Of a DNA stretch of 64,000 nucleotides, positions 5,737 to 55,206 are shown one piece after another. The position numbers and the translations under genes were made by a program. The notes beneath the pieces were generated by a model, which did no database searches, was not told where the DNA came from, and saw only the letters and a list, made by a program, of their open reading frames with translations. The first letter of the stretch is position 1; every line of letters starts with the position of its first letter. Source of the stretch: Prasinococcaceae sp. CCMP 1430 (Eukaryota > Plantae > Prasinodermophyta); assembly GCA_013416795.1 (NCBI GenBank), contig RQSC01000027.1, forward strand, positions 267,344-331,343, given 5' to 3'.

Positions 5737-6750
5737 TCAGCGACCGAGGCGAGAAACGAGCAACAGGCATGCGTACAACAGCACTACCGCTGCGGAGGGG
5801 CTTAGCCCACTGCGCGCAAAGAGGGTTCGCAGAGCTATCACCGCACGTTCGCCGTACCCCACCTGCTGTGCCCCTTCGCTCGACAACGCTGCCCGATGCG
5901 CGCTCTCAGCTTTGCGAGTGCCCCCGCCAGAACCCGTATCAAAGAGAAGAACATGCGTCACTCTGCAGAGATCAGCATTAGAGACGACGTGGTACCCGTT
6001 CTCCACACGGTCGGCGCCATCCTGGACGAGCTCCACGACGAGCACAGGCGCTGCGCGGCGTGGAAGCGTGGCCGCCGCCGACCAGCCATCCACGGCTGCG
6101 GGCGTCGCGAATGAGAGGGCAGTCGTCAGGTGCTCCGCCAGATAGATGCCATCGCCGAATACCGACCCATTGCGCTCGAGGGTCTCGCGGCCGCTCGCGC
6201 TAATGAGGCCACCGCAGCGGAATATGGAGTGCAGACGCTCTGCCGCTGTGCCATGGTAGAGACGTCGCGTTCCGTTGCGCACCGCAGCAGCTGCGAACGC
6301 GCTCGAGCGCGCTGACCGCCCGCCCGCGTCGAGATCGACGCACATCACGGCGCACGGCCAGGTGCCGTCGACGCCACCTCCAGCGGCCGCACACTGCCGC
6401 CGCAGCCAATCCGGCAGCGCAGATGGCTCCGTCTCCATGTGGCACGCGCGCATCCTTGCCGCGCCAGTGTGTATGAACTCTGCGAGCGCCTCCCTGGCGT
6501 TGCCTGCAGCGCTGCCGACGCAGACATCTCTCCACTTCTCCGCACGTGGCAGCGCGTCGAGCTCTATGCATGCTGCTGCGAACCTATCCGCCATGCCACC
6601 TAGCGCGCGCGGGAAGGGCGCGCAACAACTCGCCCGCCGCGGGCCTCGCGCCGCCCACGCAAAGGCGTGCGCGCACAGCTCCACCTCTGCCGCTGCCGCG
6701 GAGCACCCGTTGCCGCGCCCCCCTGGCGGTGCCGGCGGGCGCGCAGCCAT
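5737..6750 (-). CDS. PARP16/ARTD15-like mono-ADP-ribosyltransferase with C-terminal membrane anchor
   Basis: N-terminal ELCAHAFAWAARGPRRASCCAPFP resembles the PARP16 helical domain. Catalytic motifs are LYHGT...LHSI, FGDGIYLA and GYHVVSN (H-Y-Y triad), followed by a hydrophobic C-terminal tail AAVVLLYACLLLV. Confidence 0.8.
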   Translation of the reverse strand: MAARPPAPPGGRGNGCSAAAAEVELCAHAFAWAARGPRRASCCAPFPRALGGMADRFAAACIELDALPRAEKWRDVCVGSAAGNAREALAEFIHTGAARMRACHMETEPSALPDWLRRQCAAAGGGVDGTWPCAVMCVDLDAGGRSARSSAFAAAAVRNGTRRLYHGTAAERLHSIFRCGGLISASGRETLERNGSVFGDGIYLAEHLTTALSFATPAAVDGWSAAATLPRRAAPVLVVELVQDGADRVENGYHVVSNADLCRVTHVLLFDTGSGGGTRKAESAHRAALSSEGAQQVGYGERAVIALRTLFARSGLSPSAAVVLLYACLLLVSRLGR

Positions 6751-7171
6751 TGGCCCGGCGCCACTCGCGGGCGCTGCCGGCCGTCGCCGAGCTCGGAAGG
6801 CAGCCCCGCGCCGCCTCAGCGCGAGGCAGGACGCAGGCGCGGGTGCGCCGCCGAGCGCGCTCTGGCGCCAACACCCACTGCCCCTCACCCCCCACCCCCA
6901 CCCCCATGCCACCACGCCTCCCCTTGGTCCCAGCCGGTGATGCAGCGCTGCGTGCAGCAGGCACAGGGGCATTCGCAAGTGTTTTGACCTCACGTCATGC
7001 GGAGTGAAGTGACAGAAGTGTTCCGAGGCCAAAACATTTGCGCGGCGCTAACTCGGACAGCGCCAGCGCTGTCAACACTTTGCGCCGGCCGCCTGCCCGC
7101 GGCTCCCGCGCGGTGCCATACGTGCGCGCCCAGGTGCAGCCGGGCGGCGCCCGCCCTCCGACGGGGCGGGC

Positions 7172-13555: not shown

Positions 13556-15826
13556 TCAGACCCAACCGCGAGCTGCCGCCTGCTGGTTGCTGGGCGCGCG
13601 GCGGCCAGGGGGTCTTGGTTTTGGCGGTGGCCACGGCGCGAGTGGATCCATCTGTTCAGGAAGCATTGGTGGGGGAGGCTCCGCCGCGGGGTCCGAGGTT
13701 GGGCTCGGGCTCGGACTCAGACCGCGCTCGAGCAGCCACACTCGAGCGTTCAGGCTGCGGGCTTTGCTGCCTCCCTTGGCATCGCGAGGGGCTTCGTCGC
13801 TGGATACCATCAGGTTGGTCCTGTCCTCCAGCGCAGAGGTGGCTGCAATGCTGGGATCAGTTTCGAAGCGTATGTTCCTGCGCGCGTCAGTTTGCTGTGG
13901 CTCTTCCGCACTGACCCACTCCCCGAAACTGGACGACACTGACGTTGCGCTCGCGTGTCCACTGCTGGCGGGACGCGGCGGCGATGCCATGGCCGGGGCG
14001 TCATCGCACTCCTGCGGCATCGGCAGCGCCTTTGGCGAATCGCAGGGCCCCGCCACCAGAGTGGGAAATTCGGGCTGGCCCTCGCTGTCCGGGACAACGG
14101 AGGTAGGGCTCGAGTTGGCCGCGGCGGAGAGAGCGACCGCCTCAACGTCGCCCACGGACGCGGCGGGCGAGATCCGCGGCTCGTTGGGCGCGCCTTCCTC
14201 GTCGATGCGGCCCTTGCTGCTGCTAAACGGCGACGTGTCTGCTACCACTGCCTCCGCCGACCCAGCGCATTTGTTGGACGCATGTGCAGACTCGGCGACG
14301 TCGTTTTCCTCCGCCTCTGTAGCTTCGAGGTCTGCCTCCTCATGAATGGTGGGGGAGAGCGAGAAATGCGGCCTGCTTCCGACGCTGCCGCTGCTTGCCT
14401 GCGGCGGCGGCGACTGCTGTTGCCTCGCCTCCATGTGCTTTGGCTGCCCGGGCAATGGCGTTCCTCCCGGCGACCGCTTGAGGTTTGTCTTCCGTAGCGG
14501 ATTGTTCCCTCGCTGGCGAAGCTCAGCCATGAGCGCGTCGCGAGGCGTCACCGGCGGCAGTGGTGCGCGCGCCACAGGAGGCGGCGGTGGCGGCTTCGGC
14601 GGTGGCGGACAGGCGGCCGTCGGCGCGCCGGGAGCAGCTCCGCCGAGTGCCGATGGGAGCGGGGCCGGCGGGGGAGGAGGGGCCGGCGGAGGAGGCGCTG
14701 TCGCCTGCACGTGCGCGGCCGCAACAGCGGCGGTGCTGGTAAACGGCGCCTGCTGCGGCATTGCCGGGACGGAAGCTGGCAACGGAGTTGCTGCGACCAG
14801 TGGAGCTGCTTGCACGCGCGTCGCCATCTGCGGGCTACGGTTCACAGAGCTCGTGCTCTCATCGTCAGAGCCTGCGACGCTTGGTATGTAGCATCCTACG
14901 AAGCAGCCACCCTTGCGGCCGAAGAGCCCGCCGCCGCTGCGCTTGCTTTTCTTCTTCTGCTTGTGCTTCGCCGTCGAGGCCTTGCCCGTCGCCTCCGCGC
15001 GCACCGCCGGTGGCTGCTGCTGCTCTGCCACGCGCGCGCTCATCTGCTCCATGCGCGACCGCAGCTCCTTGATCTCCTCTTGCATCGCCGCGGACCTTGG
15101 GGACGGCCTCGACTCCTCGGCGGCGGCGGTGGGAATTGTCATTCCGGCCGCCGCGGACAGCGCCCTCGGTGCGTCCCTCGCCGCCTTACGCAGCGCTTCC
15201 CGCTCCGCCTTCGCTTGCTCGGGCACCGCGGCCAGCGCCGACACCGCGCGGGTAGGCGCTCTCGTCTTGCCCGCAGCCAGGTCGCGTGACGCTGTGCCTG
15301 GGGTCAGGGGCTGCCTGCGCCGCGCAACCCAGGGCGTCGCCGGCTCGGCCTTCCTCGGCGGCGACAGCGGCGCGCGTGCGGAGCCCAGCGACGTCCTGCG
15401 GCGCGGCTGCCCGGCCAGCGGCGAACGGCTGCGTGGCCTCGAGCGGGCGCCCTTCGCGTCGCCCGCGCGCGGGGGCGCGTTTTCCTTCCACGCCGCTCCG
15501 TCGCAGAGGCCACCGGCGCCACCGGTCTGAGCCTCGCGGGCTTCCTTCGACTTCGGCTTCGAAAACAGCCCGACGCGGCGAGTGCGCCGAGGGCTGGCGC
15601 TTCGGTAGTTGTTCCACGACGAGGTTGCAGTGCGCATCTCCGCCGCCGCCGACGACGCGTGGCGCTGCTCCTCAACGACGCGCGCGCCTGCGCGGCCAGG
15701 CCTGACACCCACGCTCGCCTCGCGACCGCCTGTGGCTGTCACGCGCGCGACATCGGCGCCTGCGCCTCGGTCGATGACGACGCGCTGTGCCGCCGCGCGC
15801 TCGCGCCAGCGCTGCGACATCGACAT
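13556..15826 (-). CDS. Proline-rich protein with WH2-like / PRR11-MTFR-type LRKT..RSPGGTP motif
   Basis: Basic N-terminus, short coiled coil, polyproline tracts, then RDALMAELRQRG..PLRKTNLKRSPGGTPL. The start (MSMSQRW) and the 3' end are uncertain. Confidence 0.55.
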   Translation of the reverse strand: MSMSQRWRERAAAQRVVIDRGAGADVARVTATGGREASVGVRPGRAGARVVEEQRHASSAAAEMRTATSSWNNYRSASPRRTRRVGLFSKPKSKEAREAQTGGAGGLCDGAAWKENAPPRAGDAKGARSRPRSRSPLAGQPRRRTSLGSARAPLSPPRKAEPATPWVARRRQPLTPGTASRDLAAGKTRAPTRAVSALAAVPEQAKAEREALRKAARDAPRALSAAAGMTIPTAAAEESRPSPRSAAMQEEIKELRSRMEQMSARVAEQQQPPAVRAEATGKASTAKHKQKKKSKRSGGGLFGRKGGCFVGCYIPSVAGSDDESTSSVNRSPQMATRVQAAPLVAATPLPASVPAMPQQAPFTSTAAVAAAHVQATAPPPPAPPPPPAPLPSALGGAAPGAPTAACPPPPKPPPPPPVARAPLPPVTPRDALMAELRQRGNNPLRKTNLKRSPGGTPLPGQPKHMEARQQQSPPPQASSGSVGSRPHFSLSPTIHEEADLEATEAEENDVAESAHASNKCAGSAEAVVADTSPFSSSKGRIDEEGAPNEPRISPAASVGDVEAVALSAAANSSPTSVVPDSEGQPEFPTLVAGPCDSPKALPMPQECDDAPAMASPPRPASSGHASATSVSSSFGEWVSAEEPQQTDARRNIRFETDPSIAATSALEDRTNLMVSSDEAPRDAKGGSKARSLNARVWLLERGLSPSPSPTSDPAAEPPPPMLPEQMDPLAPWPPPKPRPPGRRAPSNQQAAARGWV

Positions 15827-16350
15827 CGCCCGGCCGGGAGCCTGCGAGTGCCGAGCGCGGGCCACGGAGTCGCCCGCAGGTCCTCCGTCCGCGCCGCCGT
15901 CGCCGCGACCGCGCCTGGAGGCGCCACGCAGCCGCCTGCCGGCGCCGCACCAAGGGCGGCGGGGCTGAAATTCAAACTCGTTTTCGCGTCGCGCGTCTGA
16001 TCGCGCCCGACCTCGCCGGCCCGCGGCAGCCCTCCTCGGCGCCCCCCCCCCCCACGCGTCCCGCGGCACGCGCCGCGCGACAGGGGCGCCAACGGGGAGG
16101 GGGGAGGGGCCAACGCGGGGCCCTCGGAAACGCCCTGAGGCGGCTTGTCCCGCTGCCGCGCCGCGCGCGCGCTCTGTGGTGTTAGCGCCGTGCGCCGCGA
16201 CGCCGTCCCCGGCGGGGCGGAAGCGAGCGCGCGCGGTGCGCCGAACAGCTCGTTTTCGCGTTCAGACGGCTGTTCGCGCTCGCGGGCGCCGTTTGTGTGT
16301 GTGTGCCGCCCTCGGACCGACAGCGCGCTCGGGACGAACACGAGCACACC

Positions 16351-16386: not shown

Positions 16387-17060
16387 ACCCCCTCTGCTGG
16401 GCGTCGGTCGTGCAACGGTACTGAGGAAATTGGAAGATGACGCGAGATCCATCATTTCCCCCGATCGACAGCGGGCCACCGTCCAGTTCCAACCAACCAA
16501 AAAACCGCCAACAGACAGTCATCAACCGACCGAAACCTCACCCCGACGTCACCCACGTGCCACGTGGGATTTATTTGTTGGGGTGAACCCGGGCTTGGAT
16601 CCGTAACTGGCGCACCCGGCACGAATGGCACGCACGTGCGGCCGTTACAAAAGCCTGCAGAATTTATCCAAAATCGCTGCCGGCGCGCGCCGCTTGCGCG
16701 CGCGCACGCCGCGCGCGCGCGAACCGAACTGCGGGCCAAATTCGCGCTCCGCGCGTTCCGCGGTTCGATATCACCAAGCATTGGGATCCCGGCGCACGTC
16801 TGCGCGGTGTAATTCCGAACCCGCTTCGCCTCCGCACGGACGGCGAGCCGGATTTGGGGCGCTCGGTGCTGTTCATACGATGACCCTTCGGCGCTGGCAG
16901 AGGCTCGGCGCATGCTCTTTTGATGGGGGCCAGCCAGCGGGCGAGTCGGTTCGCAGCCGCGCCGCGCGGCGGCCGCCGCCGCGCACCCCACCCGGGTTGG
17001 GCAGCAGGTGGCTGCGCCGGCGATGGGCGCCGCCCCACCCCAAACACACCCCGTTCAGTC

Positions 17061-19632
17061 ATGCCTGGCGCACGCTATCTGGAGACCACGGCACTCGCCA
17101 GTCCGGGCTCGAGCAGTGACACTCAAGGCACGCTCTCACGCTCGCTCTCCATGACGTCCTTGTGTGATAGCGAGGCCTCTCCGCGCTCACTTCGGCGTGG
17201 CACCCTGTCCCCCCTGTCCCACGGGCCCATGGGTGGCGATGGCGGCAGCATGCGCCGTCGCTACAGCATGCGCATCAACAGCGTGCGCATGTCCGCGGCG
17301 GGGCGCACTCCGGTGGACCGCGTATTCACCGCCGACGCGATCATGAACCTGGTGCACCTGATTCAGCGCGAGCGCGGAGTGACCTGCGCGCTGCTTGGCG
17401 GCTCTCGGGCCGAGTCGTTCGCGCCGGTCGTGCGGGCCGCGAGGCGGGACGTTGACAAGGTGATGGAAGAGCAGTGCTGGCCCGCCGCGCGGTGTGCGTG
17501 CCTGGCGAAAGCGCGTGCCTCTGCAGACCACCCGCTGGCGGACGCGCTGGCCGGGCGCAGAACCAGCAGGTCGGATGCGGCGCGGGTCGACGCGTTTTGC
17601 CGGGCGTTTGAGGATTACAACTCGTTGATGAGGCAGGAGATCGACCATGCGTTCGCCCAGGTCAAGGTGGACGGCTACGAGTGGGAGCTGGGCAAAATGT
17701 ACGCGACGTACGAGGCCTTCGCGCGGCTCAAGGTGCGTGCCGCCGCGAGCAAACGCTCCGCCGAGCGCGTGCGCGCCAGGGCTTCTCCTGCTCTTCCGCG
17801 GCCTTCTCTCTGACGCGCGCACATCCTCCTGCCCGCGTGCTTGCCGGTCGCGCGTACTCGCGTAGGAGGCAACGGGCAAGGAGCGCGCGTTCGTCTGCGG
17901 CATAACCTCTCTGCCCACCAAGAAGTCGGTTGAGCTCGTGTCGCAGCGCACCAGGGCCGACCTCATCGTGGCCCTCAACGAGCAGCAGCTGCACCGCACG
18001 TTCGTGAAGAAGCACGCGCCTCGCACGGTCATGCAGATCATCGAAACTGGGCTTACCTACGAAAGCACGGAGCTGCGCAACATCCACAGGACGCTCGAGG
18101 AGACGTTCGACTACATCTCGCTGTGGGGAGTGAACAGCTACTCGCTCTGGCTGAAGTATAGCGTCCACATCGACCGCACGCGCCAGCTGCAGGTGCTCTT
18201 GGACCAGCTGATGCGCAACGCCATGACCAAGGAGGAGGAGGACGAGAACGTGAATGAGGATCTCATCGCTCGCACGATGGCGCTCGTGCACGCGCCACCG
18301 GCCGTCAAGCCCGGCGAGGCGTGGGAGGGGCAACGGGACGCCATCATGCGCGAGCTTGTCGATGCAGACGCGGATGCGCTCAAGCGCGCACTGCTGAGGG
18401 TGGTCGACCTCGCAGGCACAGAGGAGGACGCGTCCCTCCGCTCATTTGACTCACCCCGTTCGCCACGTGGGGTGGGACCGGAGCCGTTCCGAGCGGCGAG
18501 GCCGATGTGGCCGAACTGGCTGTCGTGCCTCTGCGGTGGGAATGGGGCCACCGCGCCGTCTTCGCGCCCGCGCGTGGTCCCGGGCCGTTTGCCGCCTCAG
18601 GCCGCGGGCAAGTTCGAGAACGCGTCTTTCGTGCAGAAGTTCGGCATTGGCCTCTACGAACTTCAGTTCCAGCACAAGATTGGCTCCGGGGCAGCGGGCA
18701 CCACCTACGCCGCGGACTTTAAAGGCAAGCGGGTCGCCGTCAAGGTCGCCGGGAGCAGTGAGGTCAGCCTGGATGGATGGGAGGCTGAGGTGGTCGTGCT
18801 GGGCTATCTGAATCACGTCAACGTCGTGAGCTTCCTGGGGGCGGTGATGGAACCTCCCACCCACTGCCTGGTCATGGAGTTCTGCGAGGGAGGGGACTTG
18901 AGCGCGGCGCTCACGCGCAGCACGCCCAAGGGCTTCTTCATGCGCATGGCACGAGGAATCGCCAGCGGCATGGAATACCTGCACTCGAAGAGCATCCTGC
19001 ACAGAGACCTCAAGTCCTCCAACGTGCTGCTGTCTGCAGACCTGGAAGCCAAGGTCACCGACCTCGGGCTCTCCGTGGCGCTCCGCACCGAGGACGACGA
19101 GACCATCGCGCGCGCCCACGTGCTCACTTCGGAGATCGGCACGTACCGGTGGATGGCGCCCGAGGTTTTGCGGCACGAGTGGTACGTCACGTCGGCGGAC
19201 GTGTTCTCCTACTCGATGGTGCTCTTTGAGATCCTCACACATCAGCTTCCGCACGCGGATCGGACGCCGCTCAAGGCTGCTCTGTCCAACGCCACCGGCG
19301 ACGGCGAGCGGCCGCGGCTGCCGGAAGGCGTGCCGCCGGCGGTGCGAGCGCTCGTTGAGGCATGCTGGGACAGCATGCCGCACCGTCGCCCGGCGTTCGC
19401 CGACATAGTCCGGCGGTTGGACGCAATCGAGGCCGAACTGACTCCCGAGGAGCGCGCATGGCTCGACGCGCCTGAGGGCCATCCTGTGTACACCAAGGCG
19501 GAGATCGAGGCGGCCAGCACCAAGAAGAACTCCAGGACGGCGGAGCTCGAGACCGCCGACAGCAAGAGGTCGTCGAAGAAGTCGTCCGCAAGGTCGTCCG
19601 ATCACGGGACGCGCTCGACGACGCCCAGATGA
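17061..19632 (+). CDS. NIT (nitrate/nitrite-sensing) domain - Raf-like/TKL Ser/Thr kinase; 2 exons (17061-17732, 17866-19632)
   Basis: Removing the GT-AG intron 17733-17865 gives LVHLIQRERG...FARLK|EATGKERAFVCG...LWLKYSVHIDR, the NIT signatures. Kinase motifs are IGSGAAG, VAVK, HRDLKSSN, DLG and GTYRWMAPE. No TM segment is seen. Confidence 0.85.
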
Positions 19633-34525: not shown

Positions 34526-37500
34526 TCATGTGCCCGTGATATCGCCGCTTGTGCTTGGAGGACGCAGCGGTTCGCTCGCCCTGCGGCTCAAGGCCCGTAT
34601 CTCGGCCATTCGCTCACCCGCCACGACCTGCACCTCCTCGAGTGCCGCGGGATGGCGCTGAACGGCCTCCTGCCACTCGTCGCGGTCGAGCCGGAGAAGC
34701 TGGCATCCCTCGTCGCCCGTCACGACCGTTGCGACGCGAAGGCTGTCTGGGTTTAGAAGCGCCATCTCGCCAAAGTAGTCGCCCGTGCGAAGAATTTTCT
34801 GGCCCTCGCCGTCCGTGATGGCGGAGTCGCTCCCGCTTCTCGCCATTGACTTCCCAGGATCTGCGTCGTGCAGCTGCACAATCGCGCTGCCACTGTGGAT
34901 GAAGTACATCGAGTCCCCCCGATCACCGCGTCTGACGACGACCTCGCCAGGATCCATTGTCTCAAGCGCGAGCTCGGCAAAGAGCTCGTCGCAAAGCTGC
35001 GGGTGGTGCTGCATGAATGGACACTCGCGCAAGAGCTGGGCAACGCCACGGGTGAGAAAGAGAGTGCTTGCTTGGCGCGTTGTGGCTGTGCGCCTAATTG
35101 CACGCAGCGTGTCGGGAAAGTTCGCCATGACGTGGCTAAAGTCGTCCTCGTTGAGCACCAGCACTTGCACGCCCCTCTCGCCAGCACGCACGTCTGCATT
35201 GCGCTTGCTGTGGGTTTCGATGAGCGCGCCCTCGCCGAAGAAGTCGCCTAATTTGAGGCGTACCACGCCACTGCGCGAAGCGCCGCCGCGTTCATGGGCG
35301 CGCGCGCCCGAGCTCCGAACCGACGCATCCTCAGGGATCGTCGCGGGCGCCGAGCGCCGCGAGCTCCGCAAGGTCTTGCCCGCTTTGCTTGGCAGAAGAA
35401 CTTCGGCAGTGCCGTCGTAACAAAAGAACATCTCCCGCCCGATGTCGCCTCTGCGCACAATGTACTCTCCCGGTCGATACGATCTGAGTTGCATGCGCGG
35501 GAAAAGAGCGACCGCGACCTCTGAGCCCTCGTCGCCTTGCGAGAAGAGCGGGCATACCGCGACGATGCGAGCAGCGTTGTGCATTGCGTTCTCAGTCTGC
35601 CTGCCCTCTGCCGTCGTGGACACCTTCTCGGCAAAGTCGGAATCTCTGATGAGGATGGCGTCCCTGTCGTCCTTGTCGAGCTTCATGAGCTCGCACCGCG
35701 GACTCTCAACGATGATGCTGGCCGTGCGCCCAGTGTCTGTAGCCATCTCGCCGAAGAACGCGCCCTGGCCGAGCCCAGCCACGCGGTCACCCGGCAGCTT
35801 GAGCTTGCCGTCGTCGCCGTCGGGCTTGGCGACGTACACACCAAGCTCACCCCTTGTGACAAAGTAGACGCCGTCGCTGGGATCCCCCTGTCGGAAGACG
35901 TGCTTGCCCTTGCGCAGCTTGACCGAGTGAAGTGCGTCCAGGATCTGCTGGATGGACTGAAACGACAGCCCGCTGAGGCTCGGCAGCTGGAGAAGCGTTC
36001 TTCCCAGGATGTCCAAGTGGTTTGGTTTATGCGCGCGGACGAACGCGGTCAGCAGATTCGTCTGTGCCAGCTGTTCCATCCACTCCTTGTTGCGCTTGTC
36101 GCCGCTGACACCCTCGACCATGGCGCCTTCGAGAAAGAGACGGAGGCGCTCGACAGCGCCATCCGGCGCGGTCACAGACTGGGTTATCACATGCGCTTCG
36201 ACGTGGGTCATCAAGGCACCAATATACTCGCGCATCACGCCGAGGAACTGGTTTGCAGCGGTAGCCTGGGCAGCCGTGACAGAGTGAAGAGGCCGAGAGG
36301 GCGGTGCACGGGACATGTACGTCGAGCTTTCGCTGCTGCCGGCAAACGAGACCGGGCGGCGCAGGCCGATGCCAAACATGCCACCGCCGCCTCCGCTCTC
36401 GGCAGGCAGCCCCTCGCGTGCGACGACGCGTCCTTCGTCCCACAAGATCTGGTGGCTTCCATGCAGGGCCGCTGCTAGGGCGGTCGCACCCGGCAGCGTG
36501 GGAAGCATCCCGGGAGCCTTGACTTTGTTCGCGGAAAGGTCGCAGATGACGAGGCGGTCCTTGTCGACGCCCGTCGCCTTTCCCGCCCGCTTTTCGTCCG
36601 GCATACCGACGACGAAGCCGTGCGTGCGCCCTTTCTGCACGCGGCGCTCGAAGCCGGGCCCAACGATGGGTACGAGGTTCGACATGGGAAGAAGCGGCCA
36701 AAGCAGGGGCGCCAACGCGAGCACCGAGGCCGTCAGCACGCCCAGGTTCTTGTGAGTCAGAACAACAGGATATTCCAGCAACGCCGCACTCATGAGGAGG
36801 AGGCAGTTGTCCACGCTGAGCGTGGCGCAAAGCGCCGGGATAGCCCAGGTCGCAATTGCTGATGCCTCCTCAGCCTCCTGCGCCCATCTCCTCGGAGGCA
36901 TGCCGTCTTGCAGCGGGAGGCCGCCTGCTCCACGCTCCAGCACCGCGTGGGCGGCGCTGTCTCCGTGCTCCGTGGGCACGTCAGCGCGCGGGACGCGTAG
37001 CTCAGCGCCACTGTCCTTGAAGTGCCCGATCTCCCCCCTCAAGGGCACTCGCAACTTGTGATAGGCGCGCAGCGTGTCGTCGGGCGGAGCGATGCCGGCC
37101 ACTTTGCCGCCGCAGAGCGCCCCAAGGCACCTCAGCCGCTGGCGCTCGGCCAGCGCGTGGAGCACATTCCACGTGGTGGTGAAGAGCGCCTGCCGGGTCA
37201 GGAAGCAGTATACGCGCCTGGTCACGACGAAGCGGCGTTGCCGCCCGCCCGCCATGCGAGCTGCGCCCGTCGCTGCCTCCCTCCGAAAGCCGTCGCTGTC
37301 CTCGCACAGCAGGGGCGGCGCGTCCAGGAGCTCGTCGGCAGCCAGGCACACAACCCAGAACGGGCGCCTTCCACCCATTTGCGCGCCTGGTTGGAATCGC
37401 AGCAAGTACGCTCCCTCAGTGGACTCGAGCGCCCCCTTGCGCATCGCCATGTCATCGAGCGCCCCGGCCAGCAGCGGGCTGCCCTGCGCACCGGGCAGCG

Positions 37501-38188
37501 CCGAGCAGCGCGCGCCCGCGGGCATGACCATTTCTGGAAGGTTTTTGAGAACCCGGCGCAGATTGGCGCCGCGTACGCCATCCCCGTCGTTGGTCCCATA
37601 CGCATGGATCCTGCCGGTGCTATTGAATGTCTTGCCGGGCGCAAACGCGGACAGCAGCACGGGCTTCTCCATCCATGCCAGCGTCCCTCCGCCGCGGCGC
37701 GGCGTGCCCTTCGACTGCCCGCTGGGTGGCTTCGCACCAGGTGGTGCGCCCACTACCGCGAAGAGCTCGTAGGCGGGATCCGAAAGCTGCGCAGCGGTCG
37801 CGGCTGCGGGTGACAGCGAGATGCCGGTGGCGACCTGCATGAGCGCGCTTCCGGCCCTGCCGCTCTGCGGCGTCGCGGGCGTTGGAGGTGACGCCATCGC
37901 GGAGGTCACAGATGGAGAGGCACTTGTCGCCTCCGAGGCCGCCGACGCGTGCCTCGAGTATGGTGGGCTCGACGCACTGACACTGCCGCTCGCCGCGGAA
38001 CTCGTTGCCGCATGGGTTGCGCGGTCGCGGCTCTCGGCCTGCGCCACGACTGCCAAGAATTCCATCTGCCAACCGAGCATCTCGGGATCGCGCAGAGCAA
38101 TCTCCTCAGTCAGCTTGAACTGCCGCCGGCGCTTCACTTGCCGGCGGAAGCGCCGCGCGATGCGCTCCCACATTGTGAACACCCCCAT
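34526..38188 (-). CDS. DENN-domain Rab GEF with three C-terminal cyclic-nucleotide-binding domains
   Basis: uDENN (YELFAVVG, LPEMVMPAG, RVYCFLTR), cDENN (WAIPALCATLSVDN.LLL..AALLE..VV...NLGVLTASVLAL.PLL.P) and dDENN (FL.VMREYI, AQTNLL..F). Three CNB domains have the phosphate-binding cassettes FGEMA....RTA, FGEGAL......RNA and FGEMALL.....RVA. Confidence 0.85.
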   Translation of the reverse strand: MGVFTMWERIARRFRRQVKRRRQFKLTEEIALRDPEMLGWQMEFLAVVAQAESRDRATHAATSSAASGSVSASSPPYSRHASAASEATSASPSVTSAMASPPTPATPQSGRAGSALMQVATGISLSPAAATAAQLSDPAYELFAVVGAPPGAKPPSGQSKGTPRRGGGTLAWMEKPVLLSAFAPGKTFNSTGRIHAYGTNDGDGVRGANLRRVLKNLPEMVMPAGARCSALPGAQGSPLLAGALDDMAMRKGALESTEGAYLLRFQPGAQMGGRRPFWVVCLAADELLDAPPLLCEDSDGFRREAATGAARMAGGRQRRFVVTRRVYCFLTRQALFTTTWNVLHALAERQRLRCLGALCGGKVAGIAPPDDTLRAYHKLRVPLRGEIGHFKDSGAELRVPRADVPTEHGDSAAHAVLERGAGGLPLQDGMPPRRWAQEAEEASAIATWAIPALCATLSVDNCLLLMSAALLEYPVVLTHKNLGVLTASVLALAPLLWPLLPMSNLVPIVGPGFERRVQKGRTHGFVVGMPDEKRAGKATGVDKDRLVICDLSANKVKAPGMLPTLPGATALAAALHGSHQILWDEGRVVAREGLPAESGGGGGMFGIGLRRPVSFAGSSESSTYMSRAPPSRPLHSVTAAQATAANQFLGVMREYIGALMTHVEAHVITQSVTAPDGAVERLRLFLEGAMVEGVSGDKRNKEWMEQLAQTNLLTAFVRAHKPNHLDILGRTLLQLPSLSGLSFQSIQQILDALHSVKLRKGKHVFRQGDPSDGVYFVTRGELGVYVAKPDGDDGKLKLPGDRVAGLGQGAFFGEMATDTGRTASIIVESPRCELMKLDKDDRDAILIRDSDFAEKVSTTAEGRQTENAMHNAARIVAVCPLFSQGDEGSEVAVALFPRMQLRSYRPGEYIVRRGDIGREMFFCYDGTAEVLLPSKAGKTLRSSRRSAPATIPEDASVRSSGARAHERGGASRSGVVRLKLGDFFGEGALIETHSKRNADVRAGERGVQVLVLNEDDFSHVMANFPDTLRAIRRTATTRQASTLFLTRGVAQLLRECPFMQHHPQLCDELFAELALETMDPGEVVVRRGDRGDSMYFIHSGSAIVQLHDADPGKSMARSGSDSAITDGEGQKILRTGDYFGEMALLNPDSLRVATVVTGDEGCQLLRLDRDEWQEAVQRHPAALEEVQVVAGERMAEIRALSRRASEPLRPPSTSGDITGT

Positions 38189-38376
38189 TGCGCCGACCTC
38201 TTGACGTGGTACCGCACAGGGCGGCGCCTTGCGTTTCCCCCCAGAGCACGCGGCCGGAGCAACGCGGTCGCTGCACGCCCGGCCCGGCGCGCCGCACGAG
38301 CCGCGCCGCGCGGCACGCCTGACGCCTGCGCCCGCGTTCTCCCCAGACGGCAGAAGCCTCGCCCGCAGTGCGCCAC

Positions 38377-38421
38377 GCCGAGCCGAGCCGAGCCGAGCCG
38401 AGCCGAGCCGAGCCGAGCCGA
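38377..38421 (+). repeat. (GCCGA)9 pentanucleotide microsatellite
   Basis: Nine perfect GCCGA units in the divergent intergenic region upstream of the DENN-CNB gene. Confidence 0.95.
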
Positions 38422-38884
38422 GCGATGCGCGCTGTGGCGCGCCCGCACGCGCGCGCGCACTCACGGCCCAGCTCGCAACAGCCTCGCACACACGTGCTGC
38501 GTGCGTGCTCGCTCGCCTGCATCATCGGCAGTGCATCGCTCCTCTCCCTTCGCGGGACGCTCCTACGTCACACGCCGCCCGCGGCAAAAGAATCAGGGCA
38601 ATGCATCGATGCCTTCCATACGTACTTTCCTCACGGCGTATATTCGTATGCGCGTCCACAGGTCAGGCGCACGCTCGCCGCGGCGCGCTTGTCGTATTTG
38701 GCGCGCGCGCGCCGCTTTTTCGCGTTTCGAAAGCAGTGCCGGCGCAGCGCGCGCGCGCGGCACACCCGGCGCGGGCGGCGCGAACAGCCGCCCTCGGTCT
38801 GAAGGCAGGCCTCTGACGCGGAGCGCGCGGGGCAAGGGGTGGGGGGCGCACGCCTCACGCGCCGCGCGCGCGGCCGCGGAGTGT

Positions 38885-53567: not shown

Positions 53568-53818
53568 CGCGTGTGGCTTGCCCGTCTCGCAGCAGCGCGG
53601 GTGTGCTATGCTGCCAGCCGGGCAAAGGACTTCTGATTTTGACGAGGCGGGAATGCGCGCGCGGGGCGCTCCACGTCGCACGCTGCTCTGTGCCACACCA
53701 ACCCCTGTGCGGCGCGGCGCGGGGCGCTGGCGCTTGCAGCGGCGCTTTGACCGCGGCGGCCGCCGGCGTGGAGGCGTCCTTGCCTATCCGCCCCCGCCCC
53801 CGCGCCTGCGTCCGCGCT

Positions 53819-53850
<32 letters not shown>

Positions 53851-53949
53851 GGGGTGGTGGTGTTGGCGTGGCGTGTCGGTGACGTGGCGGTTGCCACGGC
53901 TCTCGCTCCTACGACCGCGCCGCCGTGGCGTCTGCGTGCAGGCGGAGGG

Positions 53950-55206
53950 ATGCGCACGCGGCGCGCGCCACCCGGGCGCGGCAGCGCCTGCGCACTCGCG
54001 CTGCTGCTGTGCGCGGCGAGTCCCGGCAGCGCGGCGGACTTTTCGTACTCGAACTTCGCGAGCGCAGACGCCACGCTGCGCATGGTGGGCGTCGCAAACC
54101 GCACCGACGACAGGCTGCGGCTGACGCCTGCGAAGCAGAGCCTCGCAGGCGCGGCGTGGCACGCGGAAAAGGCCTCCGTCGAGGGCGGCTTCAGCGCGGA
54201 CTTCTCCCTGCGCATTTTCGGAGACGAGGGTGTCGTCTCGTCGCCGTGCCGCACAACGGAGAATCTGCCCGAGCTGTGTGAACGGCGCGGTGGTGACGGG
54301 CTCGCGTTTGTGGTGCAGAACGTGGCCGCGGGCGCGCTCGGCGGGCCGGGGGGTGCGATGGGCTACGGTGGGATGCACAACGCACTGGCCGTGGAGCTGG
54401 ACACGTGGTTCGATGCTGACGCGCGCGACCCGTACCAGAACCACGTCGCGGTGCTCACAGCGGGCACAGGCCAGCTGAGCGCCGCCCATGCGGTGGCGCT
54501 TGGGTCGACGGTTCGCGTGCCCGACTTGGCGGACGGGGAGGTGCACTTCGTGCGCGTGAGCTATGAGCCCGAGTTCCATCCCGCGGCCACGCTGCACCCT
54601 GCGTTCAAGGCCGCGCCGCAGGTCGGACGCATCGCGTCTGGCCAAGCGCGCACGCCAGCGCTCGGCAAGGGTGCGCTCGGCACGCTCGCCATCTTCGTGG
54701 ACGACCTGAGCGAGCCGGTGCTTGTCGTCCCCGTCAACCTCGCAAACACGCTGGAGCTGGACAACGGACGAGCCTGGCTCGGCTTCACGGCCGCCACCGG
54801 CGAGGCCGTCGACAACCACGAGATACTCAGCTGGTCGGTTCGCGAGCGCCTCAGCGAGACGATGGCGTTCACTGCGCGCGCCGGCGAGGGCGTGCGTCCC
54901 GACGTGAGTATCAGCTGCGGCCAATGCGCTGCTCTGCGGCGCGCCTTAGGGCCCGCTGTGCGGCGCGCGCGCGTCGCCGCCGCTACCACTCACGCGCCCA
55001 CGCGCGGATGCGCACACACACAGCCGCTCATGCTGTGTGTACTGACGGATGCGCCTCGCGACTCTGGCACCCGCGTCGAACACACCTGCACTGCTGCGCA
55101 GCTCGACGACCCGTATGTGCCTCCGAGAGGCTACATGGCCGTCGTCGAGGCAGACAACGGGACCGCGCCCGGGGACGACTTCAATCCCACGCTCGGAGAC
55201 GCGTGA
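53950..55206 (+). CDS. Secreted L-type (legume-like) lectin; probable in-frame intron 54904-55023
   Basis: Signal peptide, LRLTPA....AGAAW, GGDGLAFVVQN, LAVELDTW.D....DP..NHVAV, AWLGFTAATG and HEILSW. GTGAGT...CAG intron boundaries are both phase 0. Confidence 0.82.
   Translation: MRTRRAPPGRGSACALALLLCAASPGSAADFSYSNFASADATLRMVGVANRTDDRLRLTPAKQSLAGAAWHAEKASVEGGFSADFSLRIFGDEGVVSSPCRTTENLPELCERRGGDGLAFVVQNVAAGALGGPGGAMGYGGMHNALAVELDTWFDADARDPYQNHVAVLTAGTGQLSAAHAVALGSTVRVPDLADGEVHFVRVSYEPEFHPAATLHPAFKAAPQVGRIASGQARTPALGKGALGTLAIFVDDLSEPVLVVPVNLANTLELDNGRAWLGFTAATGEAVDNHEILSWSVRERLSETMAFTARAGEGVRPDVSISCGQCAALRRALGPAVRRARVAAATTHAPTRGCAHTQPLMLCVLTDAPRDSGTRVEHTCTAAQLDDPYVPPRGYMAVVEADNGTAPGDDFNPTLGDA

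Follow-up and report, generated by a model that had tools for sequence, protein, structure and literature searches.

A NIT-TKL kinase fusion in a prasinodermophyte green alga: a candidate one-component nitrate/nitrite signalling protein

A 64,000-nucleotide stretch of the genome of Prasinococcaceae sp. CCMP 1430, an alga of the Prasinodermophyta (NCBI GenBank assembly GCA_013416795.1, contig RQSC01000027.1, positions 267,344 to 331,343 of the forward strand; G+C content about 67%), contains a two-exon gene whose 812-amino-acid product combines a NIT domain with a TKL-type serine/threonine kinase. The whole stretch is called the window below, and positions are counted from its first letter; the gene occupies 17061-19632 (+). 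The protein is best explained, in a judgement that leans modestly in favour of this reading, as a soluble one-component NIT-TKL signalling protein, presumably gated by nitrate or nitrite. On sequence grounds it belongs to a conserved NIT-TKL kinase family of marine algae. It is an additional member, in another lineage, of a published and biochemically uncharacterised class, and no new type of system is established by it.

Gene model and public annotation

The coding sequence is divided on the plus strand between two open reading frames (ORFs), the first running from the ATG at 17061 to 17813 and the second, in another frame, reaching the stop at 19632. The initial annotation of this DNA held that the ORF track splits a single gene and that removal of 17733-17865 rebuilds a full NIT domain, and this proved correct. 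Exon 1 (17061-17732; residues 1-224) encodes an N-terminal extension and the first half of the NIT domain. Exon 2 (17866-19632; residues 225-812 and the stop) encodes the second half, a helical extension, a disordered linker, the kinase and a C-terminal tail. Between them lies a spliceosomal GT-AG intron of 133 nt (17733-17865; GTGCGT...CGTAG), in phase 0 between K224 and E225. Its borders read CTCAAG/GTGCGT at 17732/17733 and CGCGTAG/GAGGCA at 17865/17866, and its removal restores the frame, with no internal stop in the spliced product.

Three independent lines indicate that the splice 17732/17866 is real. The Pfam NIT model (PF08376) matches exon 1 alone with 35 bits (cut-off 24.9; E 2.6e-8; model positions 1-130 of 239), and this half-domain match stops exactly where exon 1 ends. 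The second line is a family NIT profile, for which 25 NIT domains were taken from related proteins and the Prasinoderma clade was left out. It covers exon 1 over positions 1-117 (68.8 bits) and exon 2 over positions 118-244 (92.0 bits), and recognizes the spliced protein as one domain over positions 1-244 with 177.7 bits. Extension of exon 1 into the intron brings no gain (67.7 bits), and intron removal joins profile positions 117 and 118 with zero residues lost or gained. Thirdly, at the genomic locus of a sister species (L001, from Logan run SRR30000420), whose protein is 61% identical to the window protein, the ORF runs uninterrupted over the junction site and reads ...YEAFARLKEAIGKQRAF...; the GT-AG intron of this locus lies elsewhere, inside the first arginine motif, between ...IHHLQ and RERG.... 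Pfam found no match in the first 155 residues of exon 2 taken alone. The two-exon model with intron 17733-17865, in which the NIT domain is complete only once spliced, is thus confirmed at the level of sequence.

Were this splice unused, exons 1 and 2 would be separate genes, one for a half-NIT protein and the other for a kinase. Public gene PRCOL_00002451 does begin within exon 2, and prokaryote-style callers split the locus on metagenome contigs into products of 250 and 564 amino acids. Against this, half a NIT domain would be unable to fold, the pieces meet exactly at the profile junction, the corresponding site lies within one ORF in the sister species, and NIT and kinase are found in one polypeptide in every full-length relative. 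Two separate genes are therefore extremely improbable.

The ends of the coding sequence are supported by Tara metagenome contigs of the same species. Divergence between these strain contigs and the window climbs sharply directly upstream of 17061 and directly past the stop, and the contigs carry about 280 extra nt directly 5' of the start codon relative to the reference (window 17018-17030 against L004:3679-3969), an indel polymorphism. An in-frame upstream ATG at 16923 was considered as the start and rejected, since that region of the Tara contigs carries this indel and diverges by 3.6%, compared with 0.15% for exon 1. The intron is present in these contigs; they are more than 99% identical overall with 0-1 intron differences, too alike to show faster change in the intron. 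Synteny with the sister species was also sought, and the gene downstream in the window found no match at L001.

The public annotation conceals the architecture of this protein. The EukProt entry PRCOL_00002451-RA (Prasinoderma coloniale) is 100% identical to the window gene across the aligned part, and its 472-amino-acid model (window 17938-19632) starts at internal Met 280, so that the first half of the NIT domain is absent. The model furthermore removes 18871-19053 (+) as a false 'intron', an in-frame GT..AG segment of 183 nt. The reading frame is open through this segment, which encodes residues 560-620 including HRDLKSSN, and the public protein, lacking the stretch, has its catalytic loop deleted. 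The coding status of 18871-19053 is backed by a gap-free kinase alignment with the sister-species ortholog at 80% identity. Truncation and the loss of HRDLKSSN together probably explain why this NIT-kinase has escaped domain surveys.

The NIT domain

The NIT domain extends over 17352-18249 (+; residues 98-352), interrupted by the intron. In the ortholog, where the domain was available as a contiguous sequence, Pfam NIT scores 49.2 bits (E 1.2e-12; model positions 7-238 of 239). Fold prediction was made on this ortholog domain, which is 54% identical to that of the window protein, with an alignment of 26 family members. The resulting model (pLDDT 90.8) is an all-helical double bundle, composed of two four-helix bundles. 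Its comparison by VIA-align with NasR, the nitrate-responsive antiterminator of Klebsiella oxytoca, gives Z 19.4 and a root-mean-square deviation of 3.2 Å over 220 residues (PDB 4akk_B), with the next entry at Z 10.7. Foldseek likewise ranks NasR first (4akk_A), with a weak E-value of 0.075. A single-sequence search of PDB sequences with the ortholog domain returned nothing useful; the family profile finds NasR 4akk by sequence (E 3.8e-4) with both arginine motifs aligned. Overall identity between the algal NIT domains and NasR is about 18%.

Both arginine motifs and the W...HID helix described in the initial annotation are present, at residues 97-106, 223-232 and 319-327. Motif 1, LVHLIQRERG, lies in exon 1 (17349-17378, +), and its Q102, E104, R105 and G106 are invariant in the family. 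It aligns to VHMLQCERG of NasR, with QrERG on QCERG, which places R105 on NasR R50 (chain offset 27). Motif 2, LKEATGKERA, is interrupted after K224, where the intron lies: L223-K224 are encoded at 17727-17732 in exon 1 and the remainder, EATGKERA, at 17866-17889 (+). It aligns to KELAGQERAL of NasR, with GxERAF on GQERAL, so that E230 and the family-invariant R231 correspond to NasR E175 and R176. Further invariant residues of the domain, R128, R152, F233 and R252, are kept in the window protein, as is W319...H325-I-D327 of the W...HID helix, which belongs to the family consensus. In all, the window protein retains the family-invariant residues, the sole change being V to I at position 258. 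As judged from the ortholog model, it carries a NasR-like NIT domain of two four-helix bundles in which the QxERG and GxERAF arginines are kept.

The correspondence with NasR gives these residues a possible function. NasR E175 and R176 are predicted to sit in a nitrate pocket (PMC7496416), and the two NIT arginines at the interface of the bundles are believed to take part in binding the ligand (PMC7400543). The initial annotation had stated that two such arginines bind nitrate or nitrite in the bacterial NIT proteins NasR and McpN. That both motifs align to the relevant NasR residues holds good; nitrate contact in NasR is proposed and not shown (PMC7496416, PMC7400543), and McpN was cited in error, as it senses nitrate via a PilJ domain (PMC6381276).

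Kinase domain, linker and family

The kinase domain spans 18649-19428 (+; residues 486-745) and matches Pfam PK_Tyr_Ser-Thr with E 5.8e-52. With the 35 bits of exon 1 for NIT and the Z of 19.4 of the ortholog model against NasR, this completes a set of positive results for the Pfam scans and structural match that had been put forward as checks. The closest solved kinases are MAP3K12/DLK (1.9e-41) and CTR1 (1.2e-39), followed by MLK1/MLK4, TNNI3K, B-Raf, Raf-1 and ZAK, and one member of the family cluster carries the JGI annotation MAP3K11. Judged by these top solved relatives, the domain is nearer to TKL than to other kinase groups. The original label of Raf-like kinase is fair, and TKL, MLK/Raf-like, is more exact, the top relatives being DLK, CTR1 and MLK.

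The motifs listed in the initial annotation (VAVK, the alphaC glutamate, HRDLKSSN, GTYRWMAPE and DLG) were all located: after a glycine-rich GSGAAG at residues 497-502 come VAVK at 514-517, E532, HRDLKSSN at 603-610, DLG at 623-625 and GTYRWMAPE at 649-657. K517, E532, H603-R604-D605, K607, N610, D623, G625, the APE of 655-657 and R732 all stand at family-invariant columns. The kinase domains of the window protein and the sister species align without gaps at 80% identity, which points to strong constraint. By these features the catalytic core is intact, and the domain is predicted to be a competent TKL (MLK/Raf-like) serine/threonine kinase.

One catalytic motif departs from the family form. 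DLG replaces DFG at 19060-19068 (+; GAC CTC GGG), a substitution limited among the 59 family kinases scanned to three rows of the Prasinoderma clade, namely the window protein, a 98%-identical strain protein (P0001) and the sister species (P0003); the other 56 have DFG. Leucine in place of the phenylalanine could mean that the protein is a pseudokinase or scaffold, which signals by partner binding and without phosphorylation. However, the magnesium-binding aspartate, the catalytic aspartate and asparagine, the VAVK lysine, the alphaC glutamate, the glycine-rich loop and APE are all intact, the constraint between the two species is strong, and leucine is a conservative hydrophobic swap. Some active kinases carry DLG. 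A pseudokinase is accordingly improbable, and the reading of a competent kinase is retained.

Downstream of the kinase, the motif WLDAPEGHPVY (19459-19491, +; residues 756-766) represents the family form WLDAP.GHPVY, whose W, L, D, G and H are conserved to at least 90% in 30 full-length family members. The WLDAP.GHPVY blocks are placed with high confidence in the ortholog model, and the motif may form a tail, specific to the family, that packs against the kinase.

Between the two domains, 18250-18648 (+) encodes a helical extension with the conserved sequence LKRALLRVVD.AGT and then a low-confidence linker of about 65 residues that contains a conserved WLSCLC. The ortholog model, made from the first motif to the C-terminus, has helices at residues 265-279 and 283-308 after the NIT domain, pLDDT below 50 at residues 302-366, and then the kinase. 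WLSCLC (about 18520-18540; residues 442-449) is WLSACLC in the sister species, and it may be speculated that its paired cysteines could undergo S-acylation, in which case the 'soluble' protein would be located at a membrane.

At the other end of the protein, residues 1-90 form an extension rich in Ser, Thr, Pro, Gly and Arg. It is missing from the sister-species model, relative to which the window protein has a surplus of about 75-90 residues, and a conserved targeting peptide was ruled out on that ground. No signal peptide is predicted, and outside the kinase core the window protein has no hydrophobic segment. A transmembrane helix was sought in the window protein and none was found, in agreement with the initial annotation: the highest 19-residue Kyte-Doolittle mean, 1.70, falls within strands of the kinase N-lobe. 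The protein is predicted to be soluble, and a cytosolic location is only inferred.

A phmmer search for relatives with the ortholog NIT domain against 1.84 billion representative proteins returned only 70 matches, 60 of which were scanned for domains: NIT was found in 52 and a kinase in 18, the remainder being mostly fragments. A word-based search with one family member (P0018) added 18 further full-length proteins, all with both NIT and kinase. Relatives that match the window protein in both domains are 41-57% identical to it in the kinase and 24-34% in the NIT domain, and this double identity argues for one inherited fusion. Most matches are unlabelled metagenome proteins, and the named members are all haptophytes (Scyphosphaera apsteinii, Isochrysis galbana and Chrysotila carterae). 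These relatives share with the window protein its domain order, the invariant NIT residues and WLDAP.GHPVY, whereas the window protein differs in its extra N-terminus and in DLG for DFG. It also differs in its position in an unrooted maximum-likelihood tree, where the Prasinoderma pair forms its own long branch (1.78) outside any labelled clade. No sign of recent transfer is seen in this tree.

Ligand, mechanism and comparison with known systems

The architecture had initially been presented as not known to be characterised. Proteins with NIT and a kinase and without transmembrane helices had in fact been described in the pelagophyte Pelagomonas calceolata (PMC9481584, PMC12054182). Guerin et al. 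(2022) reported three NIT genes in this alga, one of them up-regulated in nitrate-rich waters; for a NIT protein with a Ser/Thr/Tyr kinase and no transmembrane helix they proposed intracellular sensing of nitrate or nitrite by phosphorylation, and the homologues they detected were confined to pelagophytes, dictyochophytes and one putative cryptophyte (PMC9481584). Nitrate-dependent expression is reported for the Pelagomonas NIT-kinases (PMC9481584, PMC12054182), the culture transcriptomes having come later (PMC12054182). Compared by description only, the Pelagomonas protein resembles the window protein in the order of NIT and kinase, the absence of transmembrane helices and its origin in a marine picoalga, but Pelagomonas is a stramenopile and the window alga a prasinodermophyte of the green lineage. 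Neither the architecture nor the hypothesis is therefore new, having been published for Pelagomonas in 2022 and left biochemically uncharacterised there (PMC9481584).

Among bacterial proteins, NasR (PDB 4AKK) offers the closest parallel: a soluble one-component design, the NIT fold and aligned arginine motifs are common to both, and the output domain of NasR is released from autoinhibition by nitrate or nitrite. NasR binds RNA only when nitrate or nitrite is present (PMC7496416). The outputs differ, as NasR acts through an RNA-binding ANTAR domain connected by a helix, and the window protein through a eukaryotic kinase connected by a long disordered linker; a Pfam scan of the window protein found no ANTAR and no cyclase domain. 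CTR1, Raf, MLK and DLK possess a kinase similar to that of the window protein, in which NIT takes the place of the N-terminal regulatory domains of Raf and CTR1.

A bacterial-type NIT domain joined to a eukaryotic signalling enzyme also occurs in the guanylate cyclases of animals, placozoans and Platynereis (NIT-GC1) among them, and the initial annotation was right that such fusions exist (PMC7400543). In the placozoan cyclases NIT is flanked by transmembrane helices (PMC7400543), unlike the window protein; Platynereis NIT-GC1 has a predicted transmembrane region, a cyclase output and, as the shown stimulus, a nitric oxide (NO) donor. The function of the window protein would be analogous to that of the plant nitrate sensors NRT1.1 and NLP7; it is not known to be related in sequence to either. 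A paper by Monteagudo-Cascales et al. in 2023 is said to announce in its title that NIT domains were identified in eukaryotes.

In the mechanism that we favour on balance, a small nitrogen oxyanion, most likely nitrate and/or nitrite, would bind between the two NIT bundles at R105 and R231. The ligand-induced change in the NIT domain would then release the kinase from intramolecular inhibition or promote dimerisation, and the kinase would phosphorylate downstream targets in nitrogen acquisition. The signal might be passed if NIT docks on the kinase or if the ligand makes the protein dimerise, as in the autoinhibition of NasR and in Raf-type kinases; docking seems likelier than a rigid signalling helix, given the length and predicted disorder of the linker. 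Relief of inhibition is inferred here from two models, the freeing of the NasR ANTAR domain by nitrate and the N-terminal restraint of Raf-like kinases. The choice of ligand is consistent with PscN and Dd15070, whose NIT ligand-binding domains bind both nitrate and nitrite with micromolar KD (PMC12358799).

Several observations weigh against this interpretation. The fold was modelled on an ortholog domain 54% identical to that of the window protein and not on the window protein itself, the ligand role of R105 and R231 is a prediction, and the inhibition-relief mechanism is drawn by analogy only. DLG instead of DFG is unusual, though kept in the sister species. No nitrate-assimilation gene was found in the 64-kb window. 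Finally, two characterised NIT proteins behave otherwise: neither nitrate nor nitrite was bound by the PA4520 NIT domain, in a study whose authors proposed that NIT domains form a superfamily with differing ligands (PMC6381276), while Platynereis NIT-GC1 produces cyclic GMP when given the NO donor SNAP, for which it needs its NIT domain (bioRxiv 10.1101/2023.08.02.551600).

The last two reports, together with the low identity of the algal domains to NasR and the lack of nitrogen-assimilation genes nearby in the window, favour a different ligand. The architecture would then be right and the protein not a nitrate sensor, its NIT domain responding to NO or an NO-derived species, another small anion or a protein partner. 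Both arginine motifs, which contain the nitrate-binding residues proposed in NasR, are nevertheless invariant across the algal family, and NIT domains with an identified ligand in the literature cited here all bind nitrate and/or nitrite (PMC7496416, PMC12358799). Moreover, the authors of the NO-donor study allow that nitrite or nitrate may be the true ligand (bioRxiv 10.1101/2023.08.02.551600). A ligand other than nitrate or nitrite is a serious but rather unlikely alternative, and sensing of these anions is the interpretation we prefer. A broader proposal is offered tentatively, at somewhat less than even confidence: the NIT-TKL proteins of haptophytes, Prasinodermophyta and perhaps pelagophytes might form an ancient family of one-component nitrate/nitrite receptors, in which the anion bound to NIT directly switches a MAP3K-like kinase, independently of NRT1.1 and NLP7.

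Four other ORFs were observed in the window. A large ORF at 34529-38491 (-) encodes a DENN domain and three cyclic-nucleotide-binding domains, and one at 53578-55203 (+) a legume-type (L-type) lectin domain, with 78.8 bits barely over the Pfam cut-off of 78.3. The ORF at 5740-7032 (-) has a weak match to the PARP catalytic domain (27.6 bits against a cut-off of 26.7). The ORF at 13559-16069 (-), of 837 amino acids, has long proline-rich tracts (PPPPAPPPPP, PPPKPPPPPP) and is matched by no Pfam model. It could represent a genuine proline-rich protein or have arisen by chance in DNA so rich in G+C.

Nitrate perception by marine algae is poorly known, yet nitrate limits ocean productivity. The present analysis adds a corrected gene model, which reveals that Prasinoderma, an early-diverging member of the green lineage, has a NIT-kinase masked in public annotation. 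It also adds evidence that the NIT-TKL fusion is a conserved family with haptophyte members, and singles out R105, R231, K517, D605 and L624 as residues for mutation. A soluble sensor-kinase of this type would provide a receptor that is direct and easy to test, with one domain that can be titrated and one enzyme that can be assayed. Its interpretation as a nitrate/nitrite sensor is reasonable but unproven; if it is true, these algae would sense nitrate by a route that depends on neither NRT1.1 nor NLP7.

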